Source: Thalia democratica
Taxonomy: Eukaryota
Length of the DNA stretch: 64,000 bases
Assembly (NCBI GenBank): GCA_965202585.1
Contig: OZ241829.1
Span: 37,014,001-37,078,000 of the forward strand
Reading direction: 5' to 3'
The translations under genes and the position numbers were made by a program. Under the pieces are notes generated by a model, which saw only the letters and a list, made by a program, of their open reading frames with translations, ran no database searches and was not told the DNA's origin. Shown here one piece after another: positions 12,715 to 50,203 of the stretch. How positions within the stretch are numbered: the stretch's first letter is position 1; each line of letters opens with the position of its first letter.

Positions 12715-15700
12715 ATGAGGAGCATTTCTATTGTCGCCCTTTTGGTGGCAGTTGTCTTCGCACAAGAAGTCCCACGTTAGTATTCAATAAAAAACTTTTG
12801 TTTCAACATATAAAAAATAAATAATCTTTTTTTTTTATAGCACCACCAGTACCCGAGTCCGCTTGCGTACTCACTGGAGACCTTCAGTTCGTCATTGACT
12901 CTTCATCGTCTATCGGTGAAGAAAACTTCGCCCTTGTCAAAGACTTCGTCTACGAAGTAAGAAAATAAACTTTTTTTTTATTATTTTTGGACATAATTTA
13001 AATTTTAAGTTAATAGAGGTATAAAATAAAAACACTGATGTCATTTATTAATCTTAACTAAAACAGGTTGTCTCGAACCTTGATGTCGGAAAAGACGCTG
13101 TTCGTGTTGGTTTGTCCAGGTACAACTCTTGGGTCGATCACAGGTTCTTTTTGAACACCATGACCGATAAGGACGCCGTCTTGGAAGAAATCCAAAACTG
13201 TCCTTACTACGGACGTGGCACAAGAACTGCCCAAGCTCTGTCCGAAGTTGCCGCTCACGCACTTCAGCCATACAATGGATACAGAGGACATCCCACCGCA
13301 GTTGTTGTAATCACTGACGGAAGAAGTCAAGATGCTGCTGGTCTTGCTGCTGCAGCTAAAGCCGTCAAAGGTAGTTTTACTAAAAAAGCAATTTAGTTTT
13401 TCACTATTTTATACTTTTATTTGATAACATTTTATTACAATTAAAATAAAATTTTGCAATCTACATCTAAAAAAAAAAACGAAATTTTCATCTTAAAAGA
13501 AACTGTATTTAAAAATCTAGTTAAAGCATACTCGACAGAAAATTTCAATTTCAATTTAAAGCTTAATAAACAAGTTTATTTGCTATTTGCAAACAAAAAA
13601 AAAAGATCGTACAAAAACAAAAATATTCAAACGAATTTTGTCTTATTAGCAAAAGCTACTCGCGTCATTGCCATCGGTATTGGACCTAACGTTGTTGGTG
13701 AGGAACTAGTCACCATTGCTTCTCAACCCAGTGACACCAACGTCTACATGACCCCATCTTTCGAAGAACTGTCCGGAGTTGTCGGAGAAATCCTCGAAAA
13801 GGTAATAATGCCTTAATAGTTATACCTCAGCTATTAAACTGGTTTAAAAAATAAGAAGATCGAAAAGTTTGATACATAAGTTTATACTGTTTGTTTTTGC
13901 TTGAAAGATACTTTTAAACACTAACACTTTTACAAATAATTTAACTTGCTTATATGTTAGTATGACTTTTGTTTGCAATAAAACAAAAAACTTTTAAGGT
14001 TTGTGAAATTGAAGACGATGTCAATGAGTGTGCCGTCGGAAACGGAGGTTGCCAAGTTGAATGCGTTAACACTTTGGGCGCCTACTACTGCGATTGCCCC
14101 GCTGGATATGTTCTTAGCGGAAGCACTGAATGTCAAGATGTTGACGAGTGCTTGGAAGAAAACGGTGGATGTGAAGGTGGTTGCGAAAACAGCATTGGAA
14201 GCTACACCTGTACTTGCCCCGAAGGACTTGTTCTCGGAAACGATGGACTTTCATGTGGTTAGTAAAAGTTTACAAAAAAAAATATTTAAGTTAAAATTGT
14301 TTTAGAAATTAATTCCTTTTACAGTTGAAGATAGCTGCTTCGGAAACGATGCATGCGCTCACACTTGCCAGAACGTCGAAGGCGGAGAGTTTGTCTGCGT
14401 TTGCGACGCTGGATACGAACTTGCTGAAGATCTCGTCAGCTGCGTAGGTTAGATAAAAAATAGTTTTTATTTTTTGCTACCTTGGATAAACTGTTTTAAA
14501 ATTTATATTGCATTTTTAAAGAAAAATTTAAGAGCAAATAAAAATCAAAGAAACTATTATTTCTACAAAATACGTTTAATAAGTAGGTAAAATTTAAAAT
14601 TATTGAAACTTCTATTTTTTGGAGACAATAAATAATGTATCATTCAAAAGTTTTATTAATAGAAATGTGCACAGAGTATAGTAAACAATTGTTTAATACT
14701 AAAATTTGAGTGCAAGATAAAAACGTAGCACAGTTTTTAAATTGTAAAAAAAAACCGCAAAGCATGTTGCTGTGGTTTTTAGAAAAAACTACAAATCTTT
14801 ATCGAAATCATCGACATTTAAACTTGTCCTTAGGCAAATTAACACGTCAACTTTAAAATTTAATATCTATAAAAAGTTTTAGTTTGTGAGCAGCTTTTAA
14901 AGTCAAAGAAAAAATTAATAACAATTGAATAATTTTATCTAGATAATTGTACAAAATACTAAAAAAAGGGTTTTCTCTAGAACCAAAAACATTCTTGATC
15001 TAATATTTTTTCAACTAAACTAGATATTGACGAATGCTTGGAAGGTATCTCAGGTTGTCAACACGGATGTAACAACACCGTTGGAGGATTCACTTGCTCA
15101 TGTCCCGAAGGTCAAGGACTTCGTGATGATGGTCTTACTTGTGGTACCATTTGCTACACTTGCGAAAATGTCCTTTCCAACGACGAATGCAATGAAGCCG
15201 TTATCTGCTCAGATTTGGAGGTAAAAAGAAAGCAGTGTGAAATTTATTTTATGACGTTGAGTTATGTTATAGGAAACCTTTAAGGCTTAACTTTATATAC
15301 TTGATGATAAAATAAATAAAAAATGACATAACATAAAACAAACGTTTAAACCATACACAGTTAGTATTATTATTAAAATATTATTATTTTACCGCGTGTT
15401 AAAGAATAATAAAATTTCAGACTGCCTGCCAAACTAAGACTCGTCTTGTCGATGGCCTTCTTTACATCACCAAAAGATGCAAACAGCCTGAAGCTTGCTC
15501 AAACAACCAAATTCAAAACCCCCGTGATGCTGTTGATATCAAGCAATGTCAACTCGAAGGAGAAGTATCTGTTTGCAGGTGCTGTTGCTTCGAATCATAC
15601 TGTAACTCCGCTGGCGACTGTGAAGATGCTGACAATGGTGTAAGATGCCCATCTACTGACACTCTTGTTCCACCTAACGGGGGAAGTCTTGAATGCTCAG

Positions 15701-18700
15701 GAAATGCTGTAAGTGTAGTTTTTAGTTATATCAAGTAACAACTTTTATTTATCTAAATGTCTTGTATAAATGTACAGATCGGTGATTCATGCGCCATTGT
15801 CTGCCCTGCCGGATACGCTCCTGCTAACGGAAACGATCAAGTTTTCTGTAACTTGAAACCAAGATCTTTGGAAGGTGCTTGGGTTGGAGAAATCTCACCA
15901 TGTGTTGACATCAATGAGTGTCTTGACAACAACGGAGGTTGTTCTCACGACTGCGTTAATTTGAACGGAACATACGAGTGCAGATGTCCCAATGAAAACC
16001 CATGTCAGTTCCAAGTATTCGATCTTTTGTTCATTGTTGACTCATCTAGTTCCATTGGTGAAGCTAACTGGGCTACTATGGTCAACTGGCTTAACACCGC
16101 TGCATCCCTCTTTACCGTCGGACAAGATTTCACAAGGGTAAGTACTTTTTTATGAGACATACAAGCGTTTTATTAATAAGATTTAAGTGTTAATTGGATA
16201 TATTTTTAATCAGATTGCTATGGTAACTTACAACAACAACCAAGTTGCAAGAATGTTCTTCAACGAAATTGACAGCATCGAAGAGTTCCAACAAGGTCTT
16301 GATGTTAGTTTAAGTGAACATACTAAGCCTTAAAAGTTTCAATAAGATTAGTTTAAAAGTTAAAAATACAACACATTGAAAACAGGGTATTATCTATGAA
16401 GGACGTGGTACTAGAACAGCTTCCGCTATCAGGTTCTCTGCCGCTGAAATGCTGTCAGCTGCTTCTGGACGTCGTGCTTTCGCACCATTGGCAACTGTAG
16501 TAATTACTGATGGAAGAGCTTCTGATAAGAGATTTATGGATGAAGCCCTTGCACAATTGGTTGCTGCTGGATCCGTCAACTTTGCCATTGGTGTTTGTAA
16601 GTAGCCTAAATTTACGTTTAATACTAGGGAATAGGCTTCTATAACCGAATATTATCATTGCAGCTGAAAACTCTAACGAAAAAGAGTTGTTGAAAATTGC
16701 TGGAGGAGTCTCAGCCAGATACAGGCAAGTTGACAACTTCGATGCCCTTACCGAAGAACTTCTTAGTGATATGAGCATTTGCATTGGTGCTGAAGATCAG
16801 CATTACATGACTGTGAGTTAAAGATTTTTTTGTTAAGTACCACTATAACTGTTTATTAAACTTGACGTTTTTACTAGTCTGACGGTAAAACTTGTGATGT
16901 CGATGAGTGCGCTTACGACAACGGTGGTTGCTCCGATGATTGTGCTAACACTATCGGTTCATACGTGTGCTTGTGTCCACCAGGTGAAGAAATTGTAAAC
17001 GACGGTAGAACTTGCGATCTCAACGAATGTGCTGTCGGAAACGGAGGTTGCTCTGGTGATTGTGTCAACACTCTCGGTGGTTTCCACTGCTTGTGTGACA
17101 ACGAATTCCAAGTTGTAAGTATTTTTTTTCTGACAGATTACTTAATTATTTAGAGTAGTAGTCAAAATATGATTTTTATAGGATGGAGTCGATTGTGTAG
17201 ACTACAATGAGTGCGCTGACGACAACGGCGGTTGCTCACATGATTGCGTCAATCTCGTAGGAAGTTTCGAATGTGTCTGCCCACCAGGACTTGCACTTGA
17301 CACTGACGGTCTCACTTGTGTTGCTGATAGCTGCTTTGGACGTGACCATCCTGAACTCTGTGAGCACATTTGCACCAGCATCCCCGGAGGCGACTACGTC
17401 TGCTCATGCCAAGACGGTTACGAACTTAGCGAAGACATGCACAACTGTACTGAAGTCAACGAGTGCGACCGCAACAACGGTGGCTGCCAATATGATTGCA
17501 TCAACTTCGAAGGAGGATTCGAGTGTGCTTGCCCAGAAGGTATGTTCTTGCACACTGATGGAAAGAGCTGTGTCATCCAATGTTACACTTGCGAAAATGT
17601 CGGATCAAACGAAGAGTGCAGCGACCTTGTTGTAAGTACTTTTGAAATAGCTAGTGTATGTAGAGTTATTCTTATTTTACTTATTGTGAATAATTTTTAG
17701 ACTTGTCCACCAAGCGAGACTGCTTGCTTCGCCACTATGCGTACACGTGGATCTGAAGTTCTTATTACTAAGGGATGCAAACAAGATCTTGCTTGTGTCA
17801 ACAATCTTGTCCAAAACCCACGCGACCAAGGTGAAGGTCCATCTCAATGCAACGTGAACGGAATCCACTCAAAATGCGAGTGCTGCTGCTTCACTACTGA
17901 ATGCAATGCTGACTTGTGCCCATACCCCAACGAATGTAAGAGTTTTTTTCAAAGATAAGATAAATACTAAAAAGACAAAACTCTAAGTTATAATTTTGTA
18001 CAGTACCAACTTGTGCATCTTTCGTCGTTGAGAACGTTGTTTTCCGTGGTGTTGATTTGGATGGTTCAATCCTTCCAGGAGGTGTTGCTGCACTTGTCTG
18101 CCCAGAAGGGTTTGAACCCAGCTTTGGAGATGCTGGAGTTACCAAGCTTAACTGCGTCTACGACATGCTCAACGGAACATCTGCTTGGGATGGTTCATCA
18201 GAAGACTTTGACGTTTGCGTTGGTCAGTAAAATATATATTAACTGTCTATATTAATGAATAGTTAAATAAAAAAATTGTTTTTAGATATTGACGAATGTG
18301 CTGTAGACAACGGTGGCTGCGTTGCACCAGCATCTTGTGTAAACTACCCTGGTGGTTTTGAATGTGTATGCCCAGACTTCCCAGAAGATTACATTCTCGT
18401 TGATGGAACTATCTGCGAAAGAGATGAGTGCGCAGATATCGACCAAGGAGGTTGTTCTCACAACTGTACTAACACCATCGGAGGATACATGTGCTATTGC
18501 CCTGGCGAGCTCAGCCTTGTTACTGACGGACTCACTTGCGGTAGGATTGCCTTATTAAAATAATTATAATCAAAAATTTTTCACAATGAACCAAAATTTG
18601 TATGATTAGGTGTTTAAAAAAATATGAAACAAAGTAAACAAATAACTTATAACTTCAGACATCGACGAATGCCGTGAAAACAACGGAGGATGTGTTGAAA

Positions 18701-21700
18701 TTTGCATCAACACTTTGGGAGGAAACGAGTGTGGTTGTCACAACGCTGGATATGCTGTCGGTGAAGACGGTGTTACTTGTGAAGATATCGACGAGTGCTT
18801 GACCGATAACGGTGGCTGTAGCGATGTTTGTGTAAATACTGACGGAGGCTTTGAGTGCTCATGCTCAGAAGGACGTATTATGAATGAAGATGGTATGACA
18901 TGCCGGTAAGTAGGATAATCACAAACTTAATAAAAATTATGAGCTAAAAAATAAACTTTAAAAAAATTTCTATCAATGATTTTTATAATAGTGATGATCC
19001 TTGCTTCCCTGACAACGGTGGTTGCGAACAACTCTGCATTGTCGATGGGGATAACACTATTTGCGCTTGTGAAAGTGGATTCACATTGAACGATGACGGA
19101 ACCTGCACTGATATTGACGAATGTGCTCCAGGAGTCAACACTTGTAGCTACAACTGCACAAACACCATTGGAGGTTTCCAATGTAACTGCCCACCAGGAA
19201 CTGCTTTGGATCACGATGGAATAACTTGCGGTAAGTTTAGAAATAAACTAAAAGAAGAACAATCTAAACAGGACAATTTTTAAAATGTTACTTTTACATT
19301 CTGATAGGATTTGCATGTTTCTCATGTCACGGAGCTGCTACTAACGAAGAGTGCAATGCTGGACCTATGGAAGTATGTAGACCAGACTCACAGGCTTGTG
19401 AAAATGAAGTTCGCGTCCACCACGGAAAGAAACAAATTTTCAAGAGGTGCAAACAAGAGCATGCTTGCAGAAACAACCAGATCCAGAACCCACGTCAAGC
19501 TTTCTTACCAACACAGTGTAATGGTGATGAAGAAAATGACGTATGCAGATGCTGTTGTACCAGCCATTTGTGTAATGAAGCCGAACGTGTTTGCAGCAAG
19601 AGATGCAACATTAACAAAGCCGATCTTGCTATTATCATGGACTCTTCAAGCTCTGTCAAAGTCAAGAATTTTAACACCATGAGATCTTTCGTTCAGAATC
19701 TCGTAAACGCTTTCCAGGTTGGAGTCGGAATGGTCCACGTAGCTCTTATTAGGTACATATATTCTGTTGCAATGCTTTAAATATTAAAATTAACTTTTTT
19801 TTAATTCTTAAATCTTAAAACAGGTACAACAAAAACGTCGATGTCCGTCGTACATTTGCTGACAGCCAAACTGCCAACGCAGTCATGGACGATGTTCGTC
19901 AAACTCCTTACAGAGGATCTGGAACCAGAACTGGCCAAGCCATTCAGTACGCTCTTGAAAACATCTTCAAGACAGGAAATGGTATGAGAGCTGATGTTCC
20001 TCAAATCTTGGTCACAATTACTGATGGAAAGTCACAGGTTAGAATTTGTAAATGCATTTTCATATTTAACTAATTTATATCATAAAGTGCGTGAAGAAAA
20101 AAAAATATGAATATGTTCTTACCTAAGATAGTTTATTTATAACATTAGTATAGTTTTAAATAAAAACCAAACTAAATCAACTGTTTTAATTTTAGGATGA
20201 TGTTCTTGCCCCAAGTGAAGCTATTAGAGCAGCTGGAATTTCAACCTACGCCGTTGGTATTGGTACCACAATCGACAGATCTGAGGTTGTAAAGATATCT
20301 GGAGCCGAAGACCGTGCTTTCACCACTGCTTCTTTCGCTGCTTTGGAAACTACTGTACTTGAAAACATCCGTGTTTCTCTTTGCCAGAGTTAGTTTTATG
20401 CAAGATTATATTAAAAAAAAAATACTGAACAAAAAAAACTACTAATACATTTTTTAGACAAAGACGAATGTTTGGTTAACAATGGCGGTTGTTCTCATAC
20501 TTGTACTGACACTGACGGTTCATACATGTGTTCTTGCCCTGAAGACTTCGTTCTTAGTGGAGATCTCCGTACTTGCGTCTCAATCGCCGGTAAGATTTCT
20601 TACTATAAATAAAAAAAAAATTACTTAGTGATTAAAGATTATATAAGAACGATTAATGAAAATTAAAAAATGTATATATACTATTAGGATAAATTATATT
20701 TCAACTTTTGTTTTCAGAAAACCCTGATCAAGTTGATAATGTTGATGAGTGTGCCGATGACAACGGTGGCTGTACTCACACTTGTCAAGATACTGAAGAA
20801 GCATACGAATGCTTGTGTCCTGATAACATGTACTTGGAAGCCGACAACAAAACTTGCGCAAGTATGTAGACCTTCCTTTCGTTTTATATCTTGAAATACT
20901 TACATTAATTTAAACAAACTTTAAAGGCATCGACAACTGTGCTAGCAGCCCATGTGAACAGCAATGTGTCAATACTTTAAGTGGATACTTCTGTGAATGC
21001 GGTGCCGGATTTGTCCTTAATGCCGATGGATCAACTTGCTCCGCACGCACAACTGCTGTAGGCTGTGGTGCCGGATTCTCTCCTCTTGGACAAACTTGTG
21101 TTGCTGTTGTAGATGTTGCCACTTCTTTCGCTGACGCTGCAGCCGCTTGTACTGGTTTGGGAGCACGTTTGATGGCTGTCAATGACCTTGGAACTGCTAT
21201 TTTGGTCGGACGCGTTGCTGCCGGAGCTTGGGTTGGTTCATCAAGCGAACTTGAAGCTGGAGTATTTGTTAACTCTGACGGAAACGTCAATGCTTTGGAC
21301 AACTGGGCTGATGGTTCACCTGGAGATTTCAACAAGTGCGTGTATGTTGATGCAAACGGAAAGTTCAACACTGATAATTGTCTTTTCCGTAGACAAGCTG
21401 TCTGTGAAAAAGGTTTGCAACTTGTTAAAGCGAATAAAGTTATAAATTATTAAACTAAATTAATATTTTTTAAATAGCTCGTGCCGGTGGAGAAATTGCC
21501 TTCCTCAGTACCTGGCCAAATGGTGCTCAAGCTAGAGCTTCCTGGGTCACCGGATCACCATTCTTGAAGGTTTCAATGCCTACCATGATCAAGAGCGTAT
21601 CGGTAAGTTTTTAAACACACTATAATTAAACATAAAAAGTTATGTTTCGAACTTATTATTAATTGTTTGCAGTCATGGTTCTGTACTGTTGTGAGAAACG

Positions 21701-21861
21701 AAGGTAGCGCAGTGATCTTCTCTCAGAGCGATCTCGAGCGTGTATCTGGAAATGGATACTGCGAATTCGTTTTCGAAGGAAAAGAACAAGTACCAGTTGG
21801 TAGCTGCACAGTAGAAGCACTGAAAGATAGTAATAGTAATGGTGATTATGATGATTATTAA
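12715..21861 (+). CDS. Large secreted vWA/EGF/Ly6(three-finger)/CCP/C-type-lectin mosaic protein, copy 1 (27 coding exons, 2039 aa)
   Basis: Manually spliced exons, all GT-AG with consistent phases, total 6120 nt: 12715-12775, 12841-12956, 13067-13370, 13650-13801, 13999-14257, 14325-14447, 15024-15220, 15421-15708, 15778-16137, 16214-16303, 16386-16596, 16664-16812, 16878-17114, 17182-17631, 17701-17935, 18004-18222, 18286-18540, 18659-18905, 18992-19230, 19308-19752, 19824-20037, 20196-20388, 20458-20589, 20718-20861, 20927-21412, 21478-21602, 21673-21861. It starts with signal-like [20 protein letters not shown]. It has three vWA domains with DSSSS/GTRT/ITDG MIDAS residues, 19 EGF repeats (many D-I/V-D/N-E-C calcium-binding type), 3 Ly6-like, 2 CCP and 1 CTLD, and no transmembrane segment. 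It ends GDYDDY*. Confidence 0.93.
12864..14004 (+). other. vWA domain 1 of copy 1 (Cys-flanked, intact MIDAS)
   Basis: [18 protein letters not shown] ... GRGTRT ... [10 protein letters not shown] ... ILEKVC. Confidence 0.9.
15152..15621 (+). other. Ly6/uPAR (three-finger)-like domain 1, 14-Cys variant; paralogous domains at ~17581-17920 and ~19316-19590
   Basis: CxxC start, CKQxxAC, NNxxQNPR and C-x-CCC-x4-CN-x3/5-C end are present in all three. Confidence 0.75.
15907..16895 (+). other. EGF domain interrupted by vWA domain 2 (copy 1; copy 2 equivalent 43937-44908)
   Basis: DINEC..C..C..C.CP-NENP-[[17 protein letters not shown]...SDMSIC][16 protein letters not shown]. EGF Cys1-5 precede the vWA and an EGF-type SDGKTC ending follows it. 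Confidence 0.75.
21064..21405 (+). other. C-type lectin-like domain of copy 1 (within exon 25, 20927-21412; copy 2 exon 25 is 49260-49745)
   Basis: [13 protein letters not shown]...[15 protein letters not shown]...WVG...NWADGSPG...KCV...NTDNC...VCE. It lacks EPN/QPD and WND. Confidence 0.8.
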
Positions 21862-21865
21862 ACGG

Positions 21866-21871
21866 AATAAA
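21866..21871 (+). terminator. Candidate polyadenylation signal of copy 1
   Basis: AATAAA lies 5 nt after the stop. It is unusually close, and other AATAAA occur downstream in AT-rich DNA. Confidence 0.25.
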
Positions 21872-23199
21872 CATAGCTTTGAAACGAATTAAGAACTTTG
21901 AAACGATCTCACCACTATGCATTGTGTGTTTATTTCTAAAGTCATCTAAATATCATGCTTAGTGGATAACCACGAAACTTCCATCTGTTTTTGCTTTTTG
22001 TTTTGCTTTTTTTATTATTCGCTAATAAATTTTACAAGGTCTTGTAAACAATGTATATATATGTATATTATTTTAAGGTTCGAAAAATACTTAGACGCTG
22101 AAATAATTTAGAAGGCAGATATTTTGTGTATTTTATATATATTTTGTTAAGCATTTAACTAAATATTGATAAAAATTGATTATAAAACTATTAATAGAAG
22201 TAGTGTCTTTTATTTGTCTTAGGTAAAAGTCAAAAATAAGTAAAGTACAAAAACGTAGTATAAAAGTCCATATTAATTTTTAAAGTTCTTTCTTGTTTAA
22301 AATTAATTGAAAAACACTATTTAAGTAGTATAAGCTAAATGGAAATAAAATTCAAAATTTTTTTTCAACCATAACATATTTATGTTTGTTTTTTTAAAGG
22401 TATTAACAAGTTTAAAACTCTATTTACATTTTTTGGTATTTGGTGTCAATAATTCAAGCTAAAATTTGATTAGTTAGTTTTATAGAATATTTTTATTAGA
22501 ATTATTTTTTATTTCTGTAATAAGTCATTGTTAATCCTTTTAGGTCGTTCACTAATCAGTATTAGTTGTAAGAATAATATTTACTGAATTCTAAAGATTA
22601 TTTTTGACTAATTCTTACAATCAGGAAAGTATTTGTTTGTTTAAATATTAAGTAAACTTGTTTATGTTAAAAAATATAATAAGCATAACAAACCAAAACT
22701 TATAAAAAACAATTGAAAAAAAGTTTCAATCCTTCGTTATTTTTTTTAAATTTAATTGTCATAGATCGTATTTATTATAAGTCTTACTTAAATAAAAGTA
22801 TAAAATAAGATATATTAAAAAAAACATATCAATAATACAAATTTTTTATCTACGATTGATAAAGAACGAAACTGTTATCTTTTACCTGATACGACACGTT
22901 ATATTGTTATTGTCGTTTATCCTGCAACGTTAGACTCACACATTAAAACTTGAGCCGCTTAAACAGATGACACACGAAGAGTAAAAACGAAAAAAGCCAG
23001 AACTAAAGGGGCAGATATTTTTTAACTTTTAAATGTATAGAAAATAAAATTATATGCAATTAAACAAAATAAATCAAACAAACAAATATGAAACTTCGTA
23101 AAAAAAACTAATCGAATTTTAAAGTCACAAACATAAGCCTACTATAGTTTTTTTTACTTATATAAATAACAATCCAATATTTTTCAATAGAAGTTTCAA

Positions 23200-27597: not shown

Positions 27598-27692
27598 GTC
27601 CTTGACAAGACGCTAAAAGGTATCCGTGGTGTGCGACTCGATAACCAAAAGGTTCTTCGTACACCAGCTCTTAGAACCAAATATTTTAAGCG
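27598..27692 (+). repeat. SINE-like dispersed repeat, copy 2
   Basis: Reverse complement of the 496-605 core. Confidence 0.7.
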
Positions 27693-36400: not shown

Positions 36401-37041
36401 TACATCCGATCAGTTCCCATCCTGTTAATTTTTATTAAAGCTATTTACTACTTCATAATTCCTATTCAATCAGTTTCTATTCGAACTACTTTCAATTTTA
36501 TCTATTTCAACAAAACAAAAGCTATACTAATTGAAATTATACTCAAGTTTTGACGATGATTCAGACTATGTTGCTAACTTTTACTGAAAAATTTGACTTT
36601 TGCGTTTCAGAATGTTCAGCTGAATTTTGCAAAGAAGACTTTTTGAAAGAGGTGAATAGACAATTTTAACAAGATATTCAGAAAATTTTCTACTCTAAAT
36701 CGTAATTAATTTAATTAGTACACGTTTTATGTGCTAAACTTTTTTAAATGTTTATCTATCAGTTTTCAACAATATGAATTTTTTGTGCTGTATATGTTTT
36801 CTTTTTTGTCCTTTCTTATGTGTGTTTCAGTTCAAGTGGCCTAGGTTTTGACGCCTGGGTCCATCGTAGGACAATAATCTTGTAAAAATAACAAATATTC
36901 CTGATTACTTAGCGTAAAGTTTCTACTTCTTTAGACTTCAAAAAAATATTTTGTAACACAGAAACTTTTTAAGTTTAAGCCTGGTGTAAAGTTAAAACTT
37001 ATGGGGACATATTGTAGAAACATATTGAACTAGTTTATTGT

Positions 37042-37675: not shown

Positions 37676-40529
37676 TATAGTAAAATAAAAGTTTGACATG
37701 TGAAGTGCACCCGATGCAAATAACACCCGATACAAAATGTTTTTAAATTTATACAATTTTAAAATCTAGGAAAAAACTATTTTTTACTTTAAATCTAGGC
37801 TTAATTTTAATTTGTTTAAAACAAAGAAAAATATTTTTTTACAACTGAAACTTTTATTAAGTTGCTCAAAAACCAAATAATAAAATATATGATCATTTTG
37901 AGTGTTTAGTGAGTAAAAAATGTTATTTTTTTATATAAAATATTGCACAAGCTTTTGAATAAATACTTTACAGGTTAATATTAAAACCTTTGTTGAAAAA
38001 AAAAAGTTTATTAAGCATAACTTCATTCAACAATCTTATATAGTTTGGTACAGGGATTTTTAAATAAAGCTATAACTAATTAAATTAAGCAAATTGAATA
38101 CAAAACTAATTTAATAATTGATTTTTTTTGCGTGGCTGTAAAAAAAACAAATAATGTTTGTACGTTGTAAACAAATTACCTAAGCTGTTTGTTCGCAACA
38201 TTTTATCTGTTGTTACAAGTTTTCTTTCATACTTAAAACTTAAACTTGTATGAAAGGCTCGGTAAAGTTGCCAAAATAAATGTAATAACAAGTTTGTTTA
38301 ACAACAAAATAAGATGTAACAAAAATACTAAAGTATATAAATTTATGTATTGTATTGTTTTATTAAAATTGGTCGGAGTTATTTGACCAAACATTCTAAA
38401 AAATGCAATAACAAAACTAAAAGCATATTGAAAGCTTTGAGTCATATATCTAAACCATGATCTTTTCAGTATATGATACAATTTATATTTAAATAGGTCG
38501 AAACAATAATGTTCAAAACAAAAATAAAACTGAAAAAATTATTTACTTTAGTTTTATTTAATTTTTTTTTTTAATTTGATTCAAAAAAAACAACTTTTAA
38601 AACTGGTTTAAGCTTTTTTAAGGTAAATCCAATCTAGAATAATTATTTACCTTTACAAAATAACCTAGTTGATCTACAAATAAAACCGTATTAAAAATTT
38701 TGCACGTAACAGAAAACATTTGTAAACTTGTTAGTTTTGTTTTCGCTCAAAAGTTACAACAATTGTTTTAAAAACAAGTTTTCTCTTGTGAATTTTTACA
38801 CTTGAAAACTTTTACTAGAAAGTAAATTCATACAATTATAATTATTACAAAGGTTTTTAGGTATAATTTAGATGCTGTTTAACATTTTTTCAAATAAAAC
38901 GTGTTTTATTAAGTTTTGATATACTTATTTATAATATCTGTCTATTTTAAAGTTCAAAAATTAAGATACTGCTGAAAATATTACTTTTGTTTTCTTTAAC
39001 GTGACCCAATTTATTATCTAAAGAAAAGTTCTGAAAAGTTTACACTTTAAGCAGTAGTTTTTTTTTTTCTGGCTAGTATTGATTTTATAAACATAAGTAG
39101 CTTTAATTTAACAAAATTGTAGTCTTATGAAGATAAATTTTGAAAACTAATAAAAAGTTACAACAAACTTATATGTTAAACAACCCAATTGAAATATCTA
39201 ACAATATTAAACTATAGTTCCAGATAAGTAATAATATAACTGTTAGCAACTAGATCATAAACTTTAAATCAACTATGACATTAAGATGCTACAGTGTTAA
39301 AAGTTAAATACAAATAGTGTTTAATGAAAATTTTGCAGTTATTTTAGAATTTATAAAATGCAAAACCAAAGTTATTATCAAATTTAATTATAAATCTTAA
39401 GTTTAGAACTTTTATTTTTTTTTAATTATGTTAAAAATTTAATAGCTTTCGTTGGAACATTATGTTATAGCATTTATGACATGAAAAACAACATGATCTA
39501 CAAAAATATTTGATCGAAATTTCAAAGAAAAGTAAGAAAACTACCGTACTTAACTGGTACCATGTAAAACTTGTAAGGATGTTTAACAACATAGTTGCTA
39601 CTTACTTGACTTTACTTTACTTACGTTCATTTTATTATTTAATTTAATAATAAACAAAACAGCAGCCTTAGTTTAATATAATTTTTTTTCAACTTAGACT
39701 AAGTAGAGGCAATAATGTAAGTAGATAATAATTTAATTGTGTGCTAGTTTTCGTATCTAGATTACGTTTACAAAACTTTTCAAATAACTAAAAAGTATTA
39801 AAAATCAAAAGTTTTAATGAACTTTTACTTGAACAAAATTTTTATCTTTCAGAAAGACTGCTTACACAATTCCACGTTTTATGGTTTTATTTTGTGGCTG
39901 TTAGTGTTTCAAACGCTTAAAGTCATTTTATGTGTTATTTTTTCCAATTAAGAAAACATTAATAAAGAAATGTATGCTTTGTTGACATGCCTCCAGGCCT
40001 TTTTAATTCCTATTTAAAAAGCTTAATTTTCCATCTAAACTATAATCAAAAATGTTTTACACCAAGCTTGTAAAGTTGTTTTAAGACTAAATTTAAAGCT
40101 TTTTGATTATGAAGTTAGCTTAAAAATTCTTAAAAAAAGTAATTGTTATATTAGAAATGAATGTTTTAAGTTTTTGAATAAGCATCTTTCCGAAATTGAA
40201 TTAAAGTGTAATATTTTCAAGATTAAGGGTTAAGATGAGCTGGACAAAAATTATCAAAGAGAATATGTAGTTTAAAATGTTAAAATATAGCTACTTAAAA
40301 CTGTTGTATTTTTTTGGTGCTTAAACAATTAACGAAACGAGTTTAATTTTTCAGCGTTAAAGTGAGAAGGGGCAATTACCTCGATCTTAGAATTTTAAGC
40401 TTATATAGTTTTTAATTTAACTCTAAAAATAAAAGAAAGGTCTGCATTAGTACAGGTAAGAAATCAACTACGATTTAATAATTAAATAGTAACGTTTAAC
40501 ATAAATTATTTTGATACAAAACAAACAGA

Positions 40530-43500
40530 ATGAGGTGCATTTCTTTGGTTGCCCTTTTGGTGGCAGTTGTCTTCGCTCAAGAAGTCCCACGTTAGTATTC
40601 AATAAAAAACTTTTGTTTCAACATATAAAAAATAAATAATCTTTTTTTTTTCATAGCACCACCAGTACCCGAGTCCGCTTGCGTACTCACTGGAGACCTT
40701 CAGTTCGTCATTGACTCTTCATCGTCTATTGGTACAGAAAACTTCGCCCTTGTCAAAGACTTCGTCTACGAAGTAAGAAACTAATGTTTTATCTCTTCTC
40801 AATTTTGAACATAACTTAAAAGCAATTTAGTGAGATATTCATATTTTGTTGAACATTTTTGTTCAATGAATGACTTCTACAGTTTCCTAAAAAGTGATGT
40901 GACTAACCACACTAAACAGGTTGTCTCGAACCTTGATGTCGGAAAAGACGCTGTTCGTGTTGGTTTGTCCAGGTACAACTCTTGGGTCGATCACAGGTTC
41001 TTTTTGAACACCATGACCGATAAGGACGCCGTCTTGGAAGAAATCCAAAACTGTCCTTACTACGGACGTGGCACAAAAACTGCCCAAGCTCTGTCCGAAG
41101 TTGCCGCTCACGCACTTCAGCCATACAACGGATACAGAGGACATCCCACCGCAGTTGTTGTAATCACTGACGGAAGAAGCCAAGATTCTGCTGGTCTTGC
41201 TGCTGCAGCTAAAGCAATTAAAGGTAGTCTAAAACGTGATTTTTTTGTACAAATAGTCTTTAGAATCCTATAATAAACTAAAAATAACAATATTGCTCTA
41301 CTCATGGTTTTATAACACTTTTTAACAGTTTGATTATAATAACATTGCTTTAAAACTTTACTACTATCCTAATTTACAGCTAAAGCTACTCGCGTCATTG
41401 CCATCGGTATTGGACCTAATGTTGTCGGTGATGAATTAGTCACCATTGCCTCTCAACCCAGTGACACCAACGTCTACATGACCCCATCTTTCGAAGAGCT
41501 TTCCGGTGTTGTCGGAGAAATCCTCGAAAAGGTAACATCATCAATTTGTTTATAACTGATTTAGTAATCGAAGTTGAAAAAATAATTTATACTTTGTTTT
41601 TGTTTGACAATAAGTTTGTATTTTCAATTTAGCTATTTATTACTTATTTATGTTTCTGGTTTTTAATTGATAAACTTTTAAGGTTTGTGAAATTGAAGAC
41701 GATGTCAATGAGTGTGCTGTCGGAAACGGAGGTTGCCAAGTTGAATGCGTTAACACTCTGGGCGCCTACTACTGCGATTGCCCCGCTGGATATGTTCTTA
41801 GCGGAAGCACTGAATGTCAAGATGTTGACGAGTGCTTGGAAGAAAACGGTGGATGTGAAGGTGGTTGCGAAAACAGCATTGGAAGCTACACCTGTACTTG
41901 CCCCGAAGGACTTGTTCTCGGAAACGATGGACTTTCATGTGGTTAGTAAAAGTTTACAAAAAAAACTATTTAAGATAACTTTGTTTTAGAAATTAATTCC
42001 TTTTACAGTTGAAGATAGCTGCTTCGGAAACGATGCATGCGCTCACACTTGCCAGAACGTCGAAGGCGGAGAATTTGTCTGCGTTTGCGACGCTGGATAC
42101 GAACTTGCTGAAGATCTCGTCAGCTGCGTAGGTTAGAAAAAATAAACTATTCACTCCGTCATAAAATGAATTATTTAATGACAAACATGTTTTCTGTGTC
42201 ATTTTTATAGAACTTAATGGGAATACTATAAAAAGTGATAGTTTATGAAACTTACTTTTTATATCCACAAGTTTTGTTCTTTTTTAATCGTAACAAACTT
42301 ATGTTTTTTATAGATAGCTGAAATTTATTTGTTTTGTAAAAGTTTGTCTTAAAGTAAAAACACTTCGCTGGCCAGATATTTTTGTTGGCGGGTGTAACGT
42401 GACTTACCCTTAACTTAAAGCTATTAAAAAGTAACAAAATACATTTTTGAGAAAAAAGCATGTGGTAAGCGTTGAAATAAAAAATATATTTGTTTAAGCG
42501 TAAATATAAGACCTAAATTATATATTTAAATGACTGCTTTAAATTACTTAAAATATTTTTTACCAACAATAAACGAGACAAGCCTTGTACAAAATTCAAT
42601 TTTTAAATACTTTTTTACTAATAAACTTTTTAACTCTAATTGAACAAATTTTAAAAGCATTTGAAACTTTAATTGCTATAACTTTTAACCATAATTTTCA
42701 AGCTTTAAAAACAAACTTTTCAAAACTTGTGGTAACTTATTAAATTATGTATCTTAACATAACGTATCACGATTTGGTTTTGCGGGTAGAAACACACCTA
42801 GATATACTATAGGTGTATCAAAGTTTTATAACCACTTTAAAAGTTTAGCGGTTTGTAAGTACATAAATTAGAGGCCACTAAATACTGCGGTCGATAAACA
42901 GAAACCACGTATATGTCTTTAGGCAAGTTTACACGTGAGCCGAAAACGACAACATTTTGATAAAAACTTTTTAACTAATATGTATATAAACAACTATCTC
43001 AAAACTTATTTGTCAACTACTTCTTAGGATAGTTTTAACAAAATATAAAATAGATATTGACGAATGCTTGGAAGGAACATCGGGTTGCCAACACGGATGT
43101 AACAACACCGTTGGAGGATTTTTGTGCTCATGTCCCGAAGGTCAAGGACTTCGTGATGATGGTCTTACTTGTGGTACCATTTGCTACACTTGCGAAAATG
43201 TCCTTTCCAACGACGAATGCAATGAAGCCGTTATCTGCTCGGATTTGGAGGTAAAAAGAAAGCAGTGTGAAATTTATTTTATGACGTTGAGTTATGTTAT
43301 AGGAAACTTTTAAGATTTAACTGTATATACTTAATGATAAAATAAAAATAAAATGGAATAACATAAAACAAACGTTTAAACCATACACAATTAGCATTAT
43401 TATTAAAATATTTTTATTTTACCGCGTGTTAAAGAATAATAAAATTTCAGACTGCCTGCCAAACTAAGACTCGTCTTGTCGATGGCCTTCTTTACATCAC

Positions 43501-46500
43501 CAAAAGATGCAAACAGCCTGAAGCTTGCTCAAACAACCAAATCCAAAACCCCCGTGATGCTGTTGATATCAAGCAATGTCAACTCGAAGGAGAGGTATCT
43601 GTTTGCAGGTGCTGTTGCTTTGAATCATACTGTAACTCCGCTGGTGACTGTGAAGATGCTGACAATGGTGTAAGATGCCCATCTACTGACACTCTTGTTC
43701 CACCTAACGGAGGAAGTCTTGAATGCTCAGGAAATGCTGTAAGTATAATTTTTAGTTATATCAAGTAATAACTTTTATTTATCTAAATCTCTTGTATAAA
43801 TGTACAGATCGGTGATTCATGCGCCATTGTTTGCCCTGCCGGATACGAACCTGCAAACGGAAACGATCAAGTTTTCTGTAACTTGAAACCAAGATCTTTG
43901 GAAGGTGCTTGGGTTGGAGAAATCTCACCTTGTGTTGACATCAATGAGTGTCTTGACAACAACGGAGGTTGTTCTCACGACTGCGTTAACTTAAACGGAA
44001 CATACGAGTGCAGATGTCCCAATGAAAACCCATGTCAGTTCCAAGTATTCGATCTTTTGTTCGTTGTTGACTCATCTAGTTCAATCGGACCTGACAACTG
44101 GGCTACTATGGTCAACTGGCTTAACACCGCCGCATCCCTCTTTACCGTCGGACAAGATTTCACAAGGGTAAGTACTTTTTTTTAGGGAAATACTGTTTAA
44201 AATCAAACAGTTTGTTTTTGTAGATTGCTATGGTAACTTACAACAACGACCAAGTTGCAAGAATGTTCTTCAACGAAATTGACAGCATCGAAGATTTCCA
44301 AAAAGGTCTTGATGTTAGTTTAAGTGAACATACTAAGCCTTAAAAGTTTTAAAAAGATCATTTTAAATGTTGAAAATACAACACATTAAAAACAGGCTAT
44401 TGTCTATGAAGGACGTGGTACTAGAACAGCTTCCGCTATCAGGTTCTCTGCCGCTGAAATGCTGTCAGCTGCTTCTGGACGTCGTGCTTTCGCACCATTG
44501 GCAACTGTAGTAATTACTGATGGAAGAGCTTCTGATAAGAGATTTATGGATGAAGCCCTTGCACAATTGGTTGCTGCTGGATCCGTCAACTTTGCCATTG
44601 GTGTTTGTAAGTAGCCTAAATTCACGTTTTATACTAGGGAATAGGCTTCTATAACCGAATATTATCATTGCAGCTGAAAACTCTAACGAAAAGGAATTGT
44701 TGAAAATTGCTGGAGGAGTCTCAGCCAGATACAGGCAAGTTGACAACTTCGATGCCCTTACCGAAGAACTTCTTAGTGATATGAGCATTTGCATTGGTGC
44801 TGAAGATCAGCATTACATGACTGTGAGTTAAAGATTTTTTTTTTGTTAAGTACCACTATATCTGTTTATTAAACTTGACGTTTTTACTAGTCTGACGGTA
44901 AAACTTGTGATGTCGATGAGTGCGCTTACGACAACGGTGGTTGCTCCGATGATTGTGCTAACACTATCGGTTCATACGTGTGCTTGTGCCCACCAGGTGA
45001 AGAAATTGTTAACGACGGTAAAACTTGCGATCTCAACGAATGTGCTGTCGGAAACGGAGGTTGCTCTGGTGATTGTGTCAACACTCTTGGTGGTTTCCAC
45101 TGCTTGTGTGACAACGAGTTCCAAGTTGTAAGTATCTTTTTTCTGACAGATTACTTAATTATTTAGAGTAGTAGTCAAAATATGATTTTTATAGGATGGA
45201 GTCGATTGTGTAGACTACAATGAGTGCGCTGACGACAACGGCGGTTGCTCACATGATTGCGTCAATCTCGTAGGAAGTTTCGAATGTGTCTGCCCACCAG
45301 GACTTGCACTTGACACTGACGGTCTCACTTGCGTTGCTGATAGCTGCTTTGGACGTGACCATCCTGAACTCTGTGAGCACATTTGCACCAGCATCCCCGG
45401 AGGCGACTACGTCTGCTCATGCCAAGACGGTTACGAACTTAGCGAAGACATGCACAACTGTACTGAAGTCAACGAGTGCGACCGCAACAACGGTGGCTGC
45501 CAATACGATTGCATCAACTTCGAAGGAGGATTCGAGTGTGCTTGCCCAGAAGGTATGTTCTTGCACACTGATGGAAAGAGCTGTGTCATCCAATGTTACA
45601 CTTGCGAAAATGTCGGATCAAACGAAGAGTGCAGCGACCTTGTTGTAAGTATTTTTGAAGTAGCTAGTTTATGTTGAGTTATTATTATTTTACTTATTGT
45701 AAATAACTTTTAGACTTGTCCACCAAGCGAGACTGCTTGCTTCGCCACTATGCGTACACGTGGATCTGAGGTTCTTATTTCTAAGGGATGCAAACAAGAT
45801 CTTGCTTGTGTCAACAATCTTGTCCAAAACCCACGCGACCAAGGTGAAGGTCCATCTCAATGCAACGTGAACGGAATCCACTCAAAATGCGAATGCTGCT
45901 GCTTCACTACTGAGTGCAATGCTGACTTGTGCCCATACCCCAACGAATGTAAGAGTTTTTTTCAAAGATAAGATAAATACTAAAAAGACAAAACTCTAAG
46001 TTATAATTTTGTACAGTACCAACTTGTGCATCTTTCGTCGTTGAGAACGTTGTTTTCCGTGGTGTTGATTTGGATGGTTCAATCCTTCCAGGAGGTGTTG
46101 CTGCACTTGTCTGCCCAGAAGGGTTTGAACCCAGCTTTGGAGATGCTGGAGTTACCAAGCTTAACTGCGTCTACGACATGCTTAACGGAACATCTGCTTG
46201 GGATGGTTCATCAGAAGACTTTGACGTTTGCGTTGGTTAGTAACAAAATTATTATTAACTGTCTATATTTATGAATAAATAAATATAAAATTTGTTTGCA
46301 GATATTGACGAATGCGCTGTAGACAACGGTGGCTGCGTTGCACCAGCATCTTGTGTAAACTACCCTGGTGGTTTTGAATGTGTGTGCCCAGACTTCCCAG
46401 AAGATTACGTTCTCGTTGATGGAACTATCTGCGAAAGAGATGAGTGCGCAGATATCGACCAAGGAGGTTGTTCTCACAACTGTACTAACACCATCGGAGG

Positions 46501-49500
46501 ATACATGTGCTATTGCCCTGGCGAGCTCAGCCTTGTTACTGACGGACTCACTTGCGGTAAGACTGCCTTATTAAAATAACTTTAATCAAAAAAATTTTCA
46601 CAATGAACCAAAAGTTGTATGATTATGTGTTTAGAATAAAACGAAAATATGAAACAAAGTAAACAAATAACTTATAACTTCAGACATCGACGAATGCCGT
46701 GAAAACAACGGAGGATGTGTTGAAATTTGCATCAACACTTTGGGAGGAAACGAGTGTGGTTGTCACAACGCTGGATATGCTGTCGGTGAAGACGGTGTTA
46801 CTTGTGAAGATATCGACGAGTGCTTGACCGATAACGGTGGCTGTAGCGATGTTTGCTTGAACACTGACGGAGCCTTCGAGTGCTCATGCTCAGAAGGACG
46901 CATCATGACTGATGATGGTATGACATGCCGGTAAGTGGGAATATAAATAAAGTTATCAAACCGATTAATTAAAATTAAAAAAATACCTAAACTTTTTAGT
47001 GATGATCCTTGCTTCCCTGACAACGGTGGTTGCGAACAGCTCTGCATTGTCGATGAAGAAAACACCATTTGCGCTTGTGAAAGTGGATTCACATTGAACG
47101 ATGACGGAACCTGCACTGATATTGATGAATGTGCTCCAGGAGTCAACACTTGTAGCTACAACTGCACAAACACCATTGGAGGTTTCCAATGTAACTGCCC
47201 ACCAGGAACTGCTTTGGATCACGATGGAATAACTTGCGGTAAGTTTAGAATTGAATTAAAAGAAGAACAATCTAAACAGGACAGTTTTTAAAATGTTACT
47301 TTTACATTCTGATAGGATTTGCATGTTTCTCATGTCACGGAGCTGCTACTAACGAAGAGTGCAATGCTGGACCTATGGAAGTATGTAGACCAGACTCACA
47401 GGCTTGTGAAAATGAAGTTCGCGTCCACCACGGAAAGAAACAAATTTTCAAGAGGTGCAAACAAGAGCATGCTTGCAGAAACAACCAGATCCAGAACCCA
47501 CGTCAAGCTTTCTTACCAACACAGTGTAATGGTGACGAAGATAATGATGTATGCAGATGCTGTTGTACCAGCCATTTGTGTAATGAAGCCGAACGTGTTT
47601 GCAGCAAGAGATGCAACATCAACAAAGCCGATCTTGCTATTATCATGGACTCTTCAAGCTCTGTCAAAGTCAAGAATTTTAACACCATGAGATCTTTCGT
47701 TCAGAATCTCGTAAACGCTTTCCAGGTTGGAGTCGGAATGGTCCACGTAGCTCTTATTAGGTACATATATTCTGTTGCAATGCTTTAAATATTAAAATTA
47801 ACTTTTTTTTAATTCTTAAATTTTAAAACAGGTACAACAAAAACGTCGATGTCCGTCGTACATTTGCTGACAGCCAAACTGCCAACGCAGTCATGGACGA
47901 TGTTCGTCAAACTCCTTACAGAGGATCTGGAACCAGAACTGGCCAAGCCATCCAATACGCTCTTGAAAATATCTTCCAACCCGCAAACGGAATGAGACCA
48001 GAAGCTCCACAAATCTTGGTCACAATTACTGATGGAAAATCACAGGTTTGTATTTTTATCATCATTTTAAAAACAAAATAATTTTATAAGTAGACATTAA
48101 AGAATATATAATCAAGTGATCATAAACTTATAAAAACTCAAGAAGCTCAGAACGTAAATTTAGATTTGTTATAAGTTTTATTCTGTTTTTATTATATCCT
48201 ATATACTAAGAGTTATTTTATTAGAAAATAGAAAGAATAATTAAATTAATGTTTAAATGATAAACCAGCAGGGTATTAAGCTTCAATTAGGACACATCTA
48301 TTTTTCTTATATTTACAATACTTTCTATATTATTTGCCACTAGCTATAAGTTTTAATGAAAACTTAAGATCTATTGTTTAGTAATATAACTTCTTTTGTT
48401 CGCTTATCTCTCTATTTGAATGCTCAGTTTCGCAATCGTTTTTTATTAAATCTTATGACAATTGTCCTTCACGAACTTTTTTTGATTATAGCGTTTTTTT
48501 AATGTTTAAAACTTTTTTTAAATCTTAAGGATGATGTTCTTGCCCCAAGTGAAGCTATTCGTGCATCTGGAATTTCAACCTACGCCGTTGGTATTGGTAC
48601 CACAATCGACAGATCTGAGGTTGTAAAGATATCTGGAGCCGAAGACCGTGCTTTCACCACTGCTTCTTTCGCTGCTTTGGAAACTACTGTACTCGAAAAC
48701 ATCCGTGTTTCTCTTTGCCAGAGTTAGTTTGTGCAAGGTCATATTTTAAAAAGTACTGAACAAAAGAAACTACTAATACATTTTTTAGACAAAGACGAAT
48801 GTTTGGTTGACAATGGCGGTTGTTCTCATACTTGTACTGACACTGACGGTTCATACATGTGTTCATGCCCAGAAGATTTCGTTCTTAGTGGAGATCTCCG
48901 TACTTGCGTCTCAATCGCCGGTAAGATTTGTTACTATAATTAAAGTTAAAAAATCACTTAGTGATTAAAGATTATATAACAATGATTACTGAAATGAAAA
49001 AAATACAGATATACCATTAAGATAAGTTATATTTCAATTTTTATTTTCAGAAAACCCTGATCAAGTTGATAATGTTGATGAGTGTGCCGATGACAACGGT
49101 GGCTGTACTCACACTTGTCAAGATACTGAAGAAGCATACGAATGCTTGTGTCCTGATAACATGTACTTGGAAGCCGACAACAAAACTTGCGCAAGTATGT
49201 AGACCTTCTTATTTTTTAATATATTAGACTATTGTCATTAACTGTTTTAAATTTCCAAGGCATCGACGACTGTGCTAGCAGCCCATGTGAACAGCAATGT
49301 GTCGACACTTTAAGTGGATACTTCTGTGAATGCGGTGCCGGATTTGTCCTTAATGCCGATGGATCTACTTGCTCCGCACGCACAACTGCTGTAGGCTGTG
49401 GTGCCGGATTCTCTCCTCTTGGACAAACTTGTGTTGCTGTTGTAGATGTTGCCACTTCTTTCGCTGACGCTGCAGCCGCTTGTACTGGTTTGGGAGCACG

Positions 49501-50203
49501 TTTGATGGCTGTCAATGACCTTGGAACTGCTATTTTGGTCGGACGCGTTGCTGCCGGAGCTTGGGTTGGTTCATCAAGCGAACTTGAAGCTGGAGTATTT
49601 GTCAACTCTGACGGAAGTGTTAATGCTTTGGACAACTGGGCTGATGGTTCACCTGGAGATTTCAACAAGTGCGTGTATGTTGATGCAAACGGAAAGTTCA
49701 ACACTGATAATTGTCTTTTCCGTAGACAAGCTGTCTGTGAAAAAGGTTTGCAACTTGTTAAAGCGAATAAAGTTATAAATTATTGAACTAAATTATTATT
49801 TTTTAAATAGCTCGTGCCGGTGGAGAAATTGCCTTCCTCAGTACCTGGCCAAATGGTGCTCAAGCTAGAGCTTCTTGGGTCACCGGATCACCATTCTTGA
49901 AGGTTTCAATACCTACCATGATCAAGAGCGTATCTGTAAGTTTTTAAACACACTATAATTAAACATAAAAAGTTATGTTTCGAACTTATTATTAATTTTT
50001 TGCAGTCATGGTTCTGTACTGTTGTGAGAAACGAAGGTAGCGCAGTGATCTTCTCTCAGAGCGATCTCGAGCGTGTATCTGGAAATGGATACTGCGAATT
50101 CGTTTTCGAAGGAAAAGAACAAGTACCAGTTGGTAGCTGCGTAGTAGAAGCATTGAAAGATAGTAATAGTAATGGTGATTATGATGCTTATGATAATTAT
50201 TAA
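40530..50203 (+). CDS. Same mosaic protein, copy 2 (27 coding exons, 2042 aa)
   Basis: Exons 40530-40590, 40657-40772, 40920-41223, 41380-41531, 41683-41941, 42009-42131, 43054-43250, 43451-43738, 43808-44167, 44224-44313, 44396-44606, 44674-44822, 44891-45127, 45195-45644, 45714-45948, 46017-46235, 46302-46556, 46684-46930, 47000-47238, 47316-47760, 47832-48045, 48530-48722, 48789-48920, 49051-49194, 49260-49745, 49811-49935, 50006-50203. Every exon has the same length as in copy 1 except the last (+9 nt; ends GDYDAYDNY*). No stops or frameshifts were seen, and many differences are synonymous. Confidence 0.93.

Follow-up and report, generated by a model that had tools for sequence, protein, structure and literature searches.

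Structure of the Tandem Gene Pair

The stretch of Thalia democratica DNA analyzed here (C5:37,014,001-37,078,000 of the 801.8-Mb assembly; this whole piece of 64 kb is called the window below) carries two long and closely similar genes, copy A and copy B, lying head to tail on the + strand. The window is AT-rich (G+C 29%) and contains no Ns. Comparison of the window with itself by BLAST (self-BLAST) identified the G+C-richer blocks at about 12.5-22 kb and 40.3-50.3 kb as direct repeats, with A/B similarity confined to 12520-21925 and 40341-50288; otherwise only small dispersed repeats are in common. A first-pass annotation, made from the sequence alone, had described the flanks and most of the 3′ untranslated region (3′UTR) as unrelated between the copies, and the limits of self-BLAST similarity bear this out, a 3′ motif of about 30 nt aside. 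The spacer between the copies (21926..40354) is AT-rich and, by self-BLAST and the list of open reading frames (ORFs), unrelated to either outer flank; its 18.4 kb are unique, gap-free, and lie inside a chromosome-scale contig.

Copy A has 27 coding exons with a coding sequence (CDS) at 12715-21861, which specifies 2039 aa and was modeled with a dynamic-programming exon finder. All of these exons project ungapped onto copy B, whose 27 coding exons form a CDS at 40530-50203 (2040 codons and then a stop at 50203). The last exon is 9 nt longer in B, and the other exons have the same lengths as in A. GT-AG borders are found at 26/26 introns in both copies, and in-frame stops are absent from both. 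The exon finder run directly on B produced a model with an extra 37-nt exon and with exon 10 skipped; this model was replaced by the ungapped projection of the A exons. The predicted products of A and B are secreted vWA/EGF/C-lectin proteins of about 2040 aa, and the Pfam families VWA, EGF_CA/cEGF, and Lectin_C are matched by single exons. This domain architecture is real and conserved, because a contig from a JGI metatranscriptome (L009) encodes a colinear full-length homologue with 50% identity to protein A over residues 21-2012.

The transcription unit of copy B (40355..50288) is supported by the ungapped projection, the GT-AG borders, the lack of in-frame stops, and RNA contigs. It begins with a non-coding exon 0 (40355-40455) and intron 0 (40456-40528), defined by an exon 0-exon 1 joint in RNA and reaching up to the base before the ATG. 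In copy A the unit (12535..21925) comprises exon 0, intron 0, the 27 coding exons, and the start of the 3′UTR up to the end of A/B similarity; its non-coding exon 0 (12535-12634) and intron 0 (12635-12713) are predicted by homology to B. The A/B similarity starts exactly at the AG acceptor preceding exon 0 (12520-12714 / 40340-40529), and intron 0 itself is poorly conserved. The acceptor could be a spliced-leader trans-splice site or the sign of a further upstream exon. At the other end of the genes, the 3′UTRs are unrelated except for the motif of about 30 nt at 21895-21925 / 50258-50288, which is about 90% conserved and may be a regulatory element.

Between the coding sequences of A and B the overall synonymous divergence (dS) is 0.071, and the ratio of non-synonymous to synonymous divergence (dN/dS) is 0.15. 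The assembly contains these two copies only, and no third paralogue closer than 50% amino-acid identity was found in the genome.

A Mosaic of Near-Identical and Unalignable Introns

How is the divergence distributed along two genes that are so similar overall? The exons of A and B are 92-100% identical, and the introns range from 100% identity down to the level of shuffled sequences. The near-identical introns (1, 5, 7, 8, 11, 12, 13, 15, 19, 20, 25, and 26) share 94-100% of their letters and show no more than one indel each. No substitutions at all are found in introns 1 and 15 (0/68 in intron 15), introns 12, 13, 20, and 26 have one each, and introns 5, 7, 8, and 19 are about 94-95% identical. 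The intermediate introns (10, 14, 16, 17, 22, and 23) are 86-94% identical over the aligned columns. For introns 3, 6, and 21 the alignment is no better than for shuffles (z 1.5-2.5), introns 2, 4, 9, and 18 align weakly (z 4-6 against shuffles), and intron 24 is 72% identical (z 7.9). The range from near-identical to unalignable introns reported by the first-pass annotation was thus reproduced, as were, exactly, the lengths that it gave for intron 6 (576/922 nt) and intron 21 (158/484 nt); the borders between its classes are softer than it had drawn them, owing to introns 5, 7, 8, 19, and 24.

The eight introns that escaped homogenization (2, 3, 4, 6, 9, 18, 21, and 24) have maximum lengths of 147, 279, 197, 922, 76, 86, 484, and 65 nt, respectively. 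They are longer than the near-identical introns, which, a single one of 200 nt apart, measure 65-77 nt (Mann-Whitney p=0.008). Exceptions to this trend are introns 9, 18, and 24, short yet escaped. Divergence between A and B varies even among the introns that are free of indels, from 0/68 to 18/128. The long odd introns, namely introns 6 and 21 of B and intron 6 of A, are each unique in the genome and are therefore not recent repeat insertions, an explanation that we rejected on this ground.

Several tests indicate that the differences are not scattered at random. The alignable introns are heterogeneous in their mismatches (G=51.7, 17 df, p=2e-5), the exons are likewise heterogeneous in their synonymous differences (p=8.5e-4), and differences at third codon positions are clustered (index of dispersion 2.2 vs 0.94, p<=2e-4). 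The non-uniform divergence claimed in the first-pass annotation therefore persists once the introns are properly aligned. Perfect A=B runs of at least 150 nt number 13, where 1.5 are expected (2000 permutations, maximum 6). Most of the 13 cross exon-intron borders, for example one of 268 nt that extends from exon 15 through intron 15 into exon 16. Homogenization reaches neutral sites, as perfect runs cross whole introns and the synonymous and third-position differences are clustered, so that constraint on the protein does not account for it.

The exon ends follow their neighboring introns. Within 60 exonic bases beside diverged introns 5.0% of positions differ, vs 1.3% where the adjoining intron is near-identical (Fisher p=1.6e-7; p=4e-4 when intron labels are permuted). 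Since the exon ends at diverged introns are diverged too, these are old tracts reaching into the exons, and not introns that merely lost their alignment through indels. The dS of exon 4, which lies between introns 3 and 4, is 0.24, as is that of exon 21, compared with 0.07 overall. Amino-acid differences had also been said to cluster beside the diverged introns. They do so at the ends of exons 3, 18/19, and 21 and at the start of exon 25; the cluster in exon 9 lies 25-35 codons away from the exon end.

Tracts and Islands along the Gene

The alternation of homogenized and diverged segments was followed along both copies (positions in A are given before those in B, all on the + strand). Diverged intron 2 (12957..13066, 110 nt; 40773-40919, 147 nt; z=4.8 against shuffles) lies upstream of an old island at 13371..13998 / 41224-41682, which is made up of intron 3 (279/156 nt), exon 4, and intron 4 (197/151 nt). 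Next to it lies a recently homogenized segment of exon 5, intron 5, and exon 6 (13999..14447 / 41683-42131) with 7 differences in 449 nt and with unalignable introns on either side. The downstream one of these, intron 6 (14448..15023 / 42132-43053), is mutually unrelated between the copies (z=2.5). The short intron 9 (16138..16213, 76 nt; 44168-44223, 56 nt) was classed as diverged by alignment against shuffles.

Exons 11-16 (16393..18169 / 44403-46182) form the most strongly homogenized part of the gene, with perfect runs of 220, 195, 173, and 268 nt crossing whole introns. Inside this stretch intron 14 stands out with 7/69 differences between A and B. An old island at the end of exon 18, intron 18, and the start of exon 19 (18831..19058 / 46856-47066) was recognized by comparison with the sister lineage described below. 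The segment from the end of intron 19 through exon 20 and intron 20 to the start of exon 21 (19277..19943 / 47285-47951) is homogenized again and contains the longest concordant A-B run in a Sawyer-type permutation test (37 polymorphic sites, 19657-19813, p=0.0002; sum-of-squares p=0.0002). It is followed by the old island around intron 21 (19944..20232 / 47952-48566), which takes in the last 94 nt of exon 21, intron 21 itself, and the first 37 nt of exon 22. All 16 A-B differences of exon 21 fall within those last 94 nt; 13 of them are unique to B, and 10 are synonymous and 6 non-synonymous. The last diverged segment is intron 24 (20862..20926 / 49195-49259, 65/65 nt), in which B is closer to the sister lineage.

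In length the homogenized blocks range from roughly 100 nt to 1-2 kb, and several tracts may have added up to form the largest. According to the first-pass annotation the tracts stop at indel-rich introns. This fits the data in part: the islands do center on the longer, indel-bearing introns (the length difference given above), but several tracts break off within an exon, as in exon 18 (between 18816 and 18831) and exon 21 (at 19944), and introns 9, 18, and 24 are short.

A separate small cluster was noticed at 16053-16065 (B 44083-44095), where 9 substitutions in 13 nt turn EA in A into PD in B, two residues past the DxSxS motif of the second vWA domain. It is either a complex multi-nucleotide change or a micro-conversion.

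Comparison with a Sister Lineage

Four metagenome contigs related to the pair were available for comparison. L007 was found by a protein search with exon 20 (ORF P0001, ENA contig), and exact look-up of a second L007 ORF added L015, L016, and L017. Of these, L015 is 13.2 kb taken from a Tara Oceans contig of 16 kb, and L015 and L017 come from the metagenomes ERR1726790 and ERR1726876. They are about 90% identical to A and B, their introns and flank are about 11-36% different, and the neutral divergence is about 20%. Divergence of this size in introns and flank places the contigs in a related lineage and not in the same species. L015 contains an intact orthologue over exons 13-27 (1270 codons, all introns GT-AG) and extends into the downstream flank of B, including its acyltransferase-like neighbor (about 80% conserved), so that by position it corresponds to B. 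Sequence type S1 comprises L007, L016, and L017, which are 99.2-99.8% alike; L015 is S2.

Exact look-ups of the exon 21 ORFs of A and B and of more sister ORFs gave no new sister contigs, and the sister comparison therefore excludes the 5′ half of the gene (introns 2-9). Protein searches returned only P0001, P0011, and P0131 for the exon 20 ORF, a distant match for the exon 9 ORF, and no relatives for exon 14. A scan of JGI metagenomes with exon 25 gave distant homologues only (44-56% identity in the best tblastn segment), which are too far for tests at the DNA level. One further contig, L014 from GCA_024449705.1, belongs to a more distant relative; in its positions 1-1128 a single open frame covers what corresponds to exons 19-22 (residues 1359-1683 of protein A), without these introns.

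In the homogenized introns A and B differ from the sister by 11-36% and from each other by 0-14%. Intron 20 has 1/71 differences between A and B vs 20-25/70 to the sister, and intron 26 has 1/70 vs 12-13/68. In the introns of the exons 11-16 stretch L015 differs from both A and B by 10-25%. Among quartet-informative sites 152/165 group A+B vs S1+S2, and the alternative groupings have 4 and 9.

The islands behave differently. At the end of exon 18, the start of exon 19, the end of exon 21, and in intron 21, B stands apart from A and the sister, which agree; of the sites unique to one sequence in exon 21, 13 belong to B, 3 to A, and 3 to the sister. The A and sister versions of intron 21 differ by 24%, and the 484-nt version of B does not align. 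Intron 18 is 15% different between B and the sister, 28% between A and the sister with three indels in addition (B and the sister share these against A), and 29% plus indels between A and B. In intron 24 B again agrees with the sister, more weakly than in intron 18. In a comparison segment by segment with the sister, as the first-pass annotation had proposed, the closest pair is thus A-B for most segments, A-sister at intron 21, and B-sister at intron 18. The three-way site patterns are clustered along the sequence (runs test p=5e-5), also in exons alone, and the Sawyer-type permutation for A and S1 detected a run of 11 sites at 19972-20031 (p=0.0006).

L015, L007, and L016 all combine an A-type end of exon 18, a B-type intron 18, and an A-type start of exon 19 within about 230 nt (18831-19058). 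Either the conversion tracts were very short, or intron 18 of A was rewritten in a lineage-specific manner.

The two sister types are themselves a patchwork. S1 and S2 are identical in exon 21 (0/214), intron 21 (0/152), and intron 18 (0/68), yet they differ at 23/70 positions of intron 20 and 22/69 of intron 22, and the longest concordant S1-S2 run extends over 101 sites (p=0.0002 in the Sawyer-type permutation). The sister lineage has a second patchwork, different from that of A and B.

Occurrence in RNA and Independent Samples

Runs containing this sequence are marine metagenomes and metatranscriptomes, which were examined as assembled contigs. RNA contigs of one marine metatranscriptome run (X7) have exact splice joints for introns 4-12, 15, and 16 (11 introns). 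An X7 contig has exon 7 of the A type (0/10 B-type letters), and B-type letters together with the B exon 0-exon 1 joint also occur in RNA contigs. A and B are both intact, both represented in RNA, and both under purifying selection, and the pair is accordingly maintained.

At the DNA level, the independent genome run X3 and the wild metagenome X4 both contain introns 3 and 4 of the A type, and intron 6 of the A type lies on a 658-nt contig of X3. One X4 contig carries the upstream flank of B, exons 1-3, and introns 2 and 3 of the B type, and its intron 1, as in copy B of the assembly, matches that of A almost perfectly; B-type introns 2 and 3 also occur in X3. In the X3 contigs the region 15415-18253 (exons 8-16) is represented by a single series in which letters of the two types are mixed and the k-mer depth is intermediate. 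The Logan k-mer depth is about 97, vs 61-76 for single-copy pieces and 141 for fully collapsed ones, and B-type letters are present on the sole contig. A haplotype with a different mosaic was considered for X3 and rejected, as mixed letters and intermediate depth are the product of bubble popping. Logan contigs collapse A and B where the two are alike and are therefore unusable for phasing near-identical paralogues.

Origin of the Mosaic

Taken together, these data make it very probable that A and B are an old tandem duplication, repeatedly homogenized by short conversion tracts from which long, indel-rich introns escaped. The first-pass annotation had reached the same reading, and the non-uniform divergence, the diverged exon ends, and the sister comparison support it. 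The tandem duplication would predate the split from the nearest lineage found in public metagenomes, and interlocus (non-allelic) gene conversion would since have copied short tracts between A and B repeatedly and independently in both lineages. The tracts would be of several ages, at 0-1.5% (very recent), about 3-6%, and about 9-14% divergence, followed by islands that were never converted or not for a long time. In the islands the introns are unalignable, and the adjoining exon ends have 14-24% divergence of synonymous level. Because the three A-B levels are all below the orthologous neutral distance of about 20%, conversion must be seen as repeated and recent. The escaped islands are probably older than the split of the lineages.

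The same reading offers an account of the differences between the two lineages, including the direction of copying. At intron 21 and its exon borders the Thalia lineage would have kept both ancestral types, and in the sister the A type would have been transferred to the gene in the B position. Both sister copies would have become fixed for the B type at intron 18. At introns 20 and 22 it is the sister that would have kept two types and this lineage that would have homogenized them.

Why did some introns escape? Heteroduplex formation needs continuous homology, and heterologies, together with mismatch-repair rejection, halt it. An intron that had drifted or acquired indels would thus escape conversion and limit the tracts to blocks of exons and short introns between such introns. 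By analogy with this behavior, intron heterology is a likely barrier to the tracts here, but the escaped introns may also just mark the places where no tract has landed.

A number of observations weigh against this interpretation. No alignable segment has the orthology grouping of A+S1 vs B+S2 (4 and 9 sites vs 152), so that the age before the split rests on distances, namely those of introns 18, 21, and 24 and of the sister's introns 20 and 22. S1 and S2 never occur in one sample, and their status as paralogues is deduced from their mosaic. Changes unique to B outnumber those unique to A, with 36 vs 8 nt in exons 18-23 and 17 vs 5 aa in exons 13-27; faster evolution of B could be the source of this excess. 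Metagenome contigs can be chimeric between near-identical paralogues, in addition to the collapse of A and B in Logan contigs. The converted introns are not enriched in GC relative to the other class (intron GC 0.199 vs 0.215, p=0.21), so that nothing points to GC-biased conversion.

The grouping of A with B at 152 informative sites vs 13 would also be expected if the duplication were young and had followed the split from the sister. The odd introns would then have been rewritten in one copy, and the exon patches would be bursts of change or the trace of a lost third copy. L015, with B's downstream flank and an A-type intron 21, looks as if derived from an ancestor with one gene, and most unique changes are carried by B. 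Such a history needs bursts that alternate between the copies, in B at the ends of exons 18 and 21, the start of exon 19, and intron 21, and in A at introns 18 and 24. These bursts would have been mostly synonymous (10 vs 6 in exon 21, dS 0.24 in exon 4), and 8/26 introns would have been rewritten while others have 0-1 change. Introns free of indels vary in their divergence as well (0/68 to 18/128). A duplication after the split is disallowed in the sister, where the S1-S2 distance in introns 20 and 22 (32-33%) is no smaller than the distance to A and B there (about 28%). The genome has no third close paralogue, and a third paralogue as the donor of the B islands was rejected for the same lack of any relative above 50% amino-acid identity. 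We consider the young duplication quite unlikely. An artefact of assembly, with A and B as haplotypes or as a misjoined or wrongly polished duplicate of one locus whose consensus mixes the two, is more improbable still. It could appeal to the X3 contigs, in which copy-specific contigs have about half the k-mer depth (61-91 vs 141 for the collapsed exon 5 contig), a ratio that alleles would give too. However, A and B have unrelated flanks on both sides, unlike allelic haplotigs, there are no Ns, and 18.4 kb of unique spacer separate the copies in a chromosome-scale contig. Sequences specific to A and to B are both present in X3 and X4, there with B's own upstream flank, the sister also has two sequence types (S2 with B's flank), and both 5′ regions and both exon types occur in RNA contigs. 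It is the unrelated flanks, the gap-free spacer, and the copy-specific sequences in X3 and X4 that make the artefact so unlikely.

Selection is another candidate for the cause of the islands. Conversion would be real, and converted alleles would be disfavored where the functions of A and B have diverged, for example in the vWA loops. The amino-acid differences do cluster in the islands, at residues 1595-1604 (end of exon 21) and at 586-596 beside DxSxS of the second vWA domain, and islands under selection are described for the GOT1 paralogues of a copepod (PMC3728101). Against this stands the dN/dS of the island exons (0.04-0.15), which is the same as that of the whole gene (0.15), and most changes in islands are synonymous or intronic. 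Positive selection was rejected, since there is no non-synonymous excess. Moreover, the islands center on introns, and amino-acid changes are absent from the exon 6 side of intron 6, the exon 5 side of intron 4, and the exon 24 side of intron 24. Maintenance of the islands by selection is therefore improbable, less so than a young duplication, and repeated interlocus conversion remains the preferred explanation.

Neighboring Features

The spacer contains a fragment of a retroelement at 23270-23900 with the YMDD motif of reverse transcriptase. A short repeat (about 100 nt) is dispersed at 488-604, 27588-27693 (on the - strand), 33155-33256, and 53821-53943; its members are 77-87% alike, and it probably represents a small mobile element. 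On the 3′ side of copy B lies an inverted repeat of about 490 nt (57747-58231 / 58807-59298, 97% identical), part of which matches L015 both ways. The acyltransferase-like gene downstream of B is represented by exons at 60355-60738 and 63088-63414 (+) with the FPEGT motif of the LPCAT/AGPAT type.

Relation to Known Systems and Significance

The process itself, interlocus gene conversion, is a textbook one, and the escape of long introns is also already known. The human fetal G-gamma/A-gamma globin pair studied by Slightom et al. 1980 is a classical case of concerted evolution of tandem duplicates. That pair reportedly resembles ours in that one part of the sequence, with its introns, is much more similar between the duplicates than the remainder and has a sharp border tied to intronic sequence. 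It differs in that here there are many alternating tracts of several ages instead of one, in a much larger gene of an uncharacterized marine animal.

A parallel, published with the same explanation, is offered by the tandem HMA4 genes of Arabidopsis halleri, in which conversion homogenizes exons and short introns and bypasses the long introns (bioRxiv 10.1101/2025.10.29.685298). In both systems the paralogues stand head to tail, the long introns escape and carry the signal of age, and divergence forms a mosaic along the gene. In contrast to HMA4, there are two copies here and not three, and eight of 26 introns escaped. The escaped introns are unalignable here vs 5-6% divergence in HMA4, and the short introns 9, 18, and 24 escaped too. 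In place of population data we have a sister lineage with a different mosaic. In the GOT1 paralogues of the copepod Tigriopus californicus (PMC3728101), conversion slows the divergence of the paralogues while islands persist, and these islands are read as candidates for selection. The slowed divergence with persisting islands is common to both cases; the difference is that our islands are centered on introns and lie under ordinary purifying selection.

The consequences concern above all the dating of gene duplications. The low overall dS of 0.07 does not date this duplication, and only the escaped introns and islands do so. If the duplication is as old as these imply, trees of coding sequences would wrongly suggest independent recent duplications in each lineage, and both they and coding-sequence divergence would badly underestimate its age. 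The pair is a clean example with many tracts in a poorly studied marine planktonic animal, with a natural replicate in a sister lineage. A further idea, tentative and on balance doubtful, is that the locus records unusually fine-grained conversion in both directions, independent in two sister lineages, as the mixture of types within about 230 nt around intron 18 of the sister would suggest, and that conversion with very short tracts acts genome-wide in this group of animals. If this fine-grained reading were true, such loci could be used to measure the length of conversion tracts and the homology needed for conversion in the wild.

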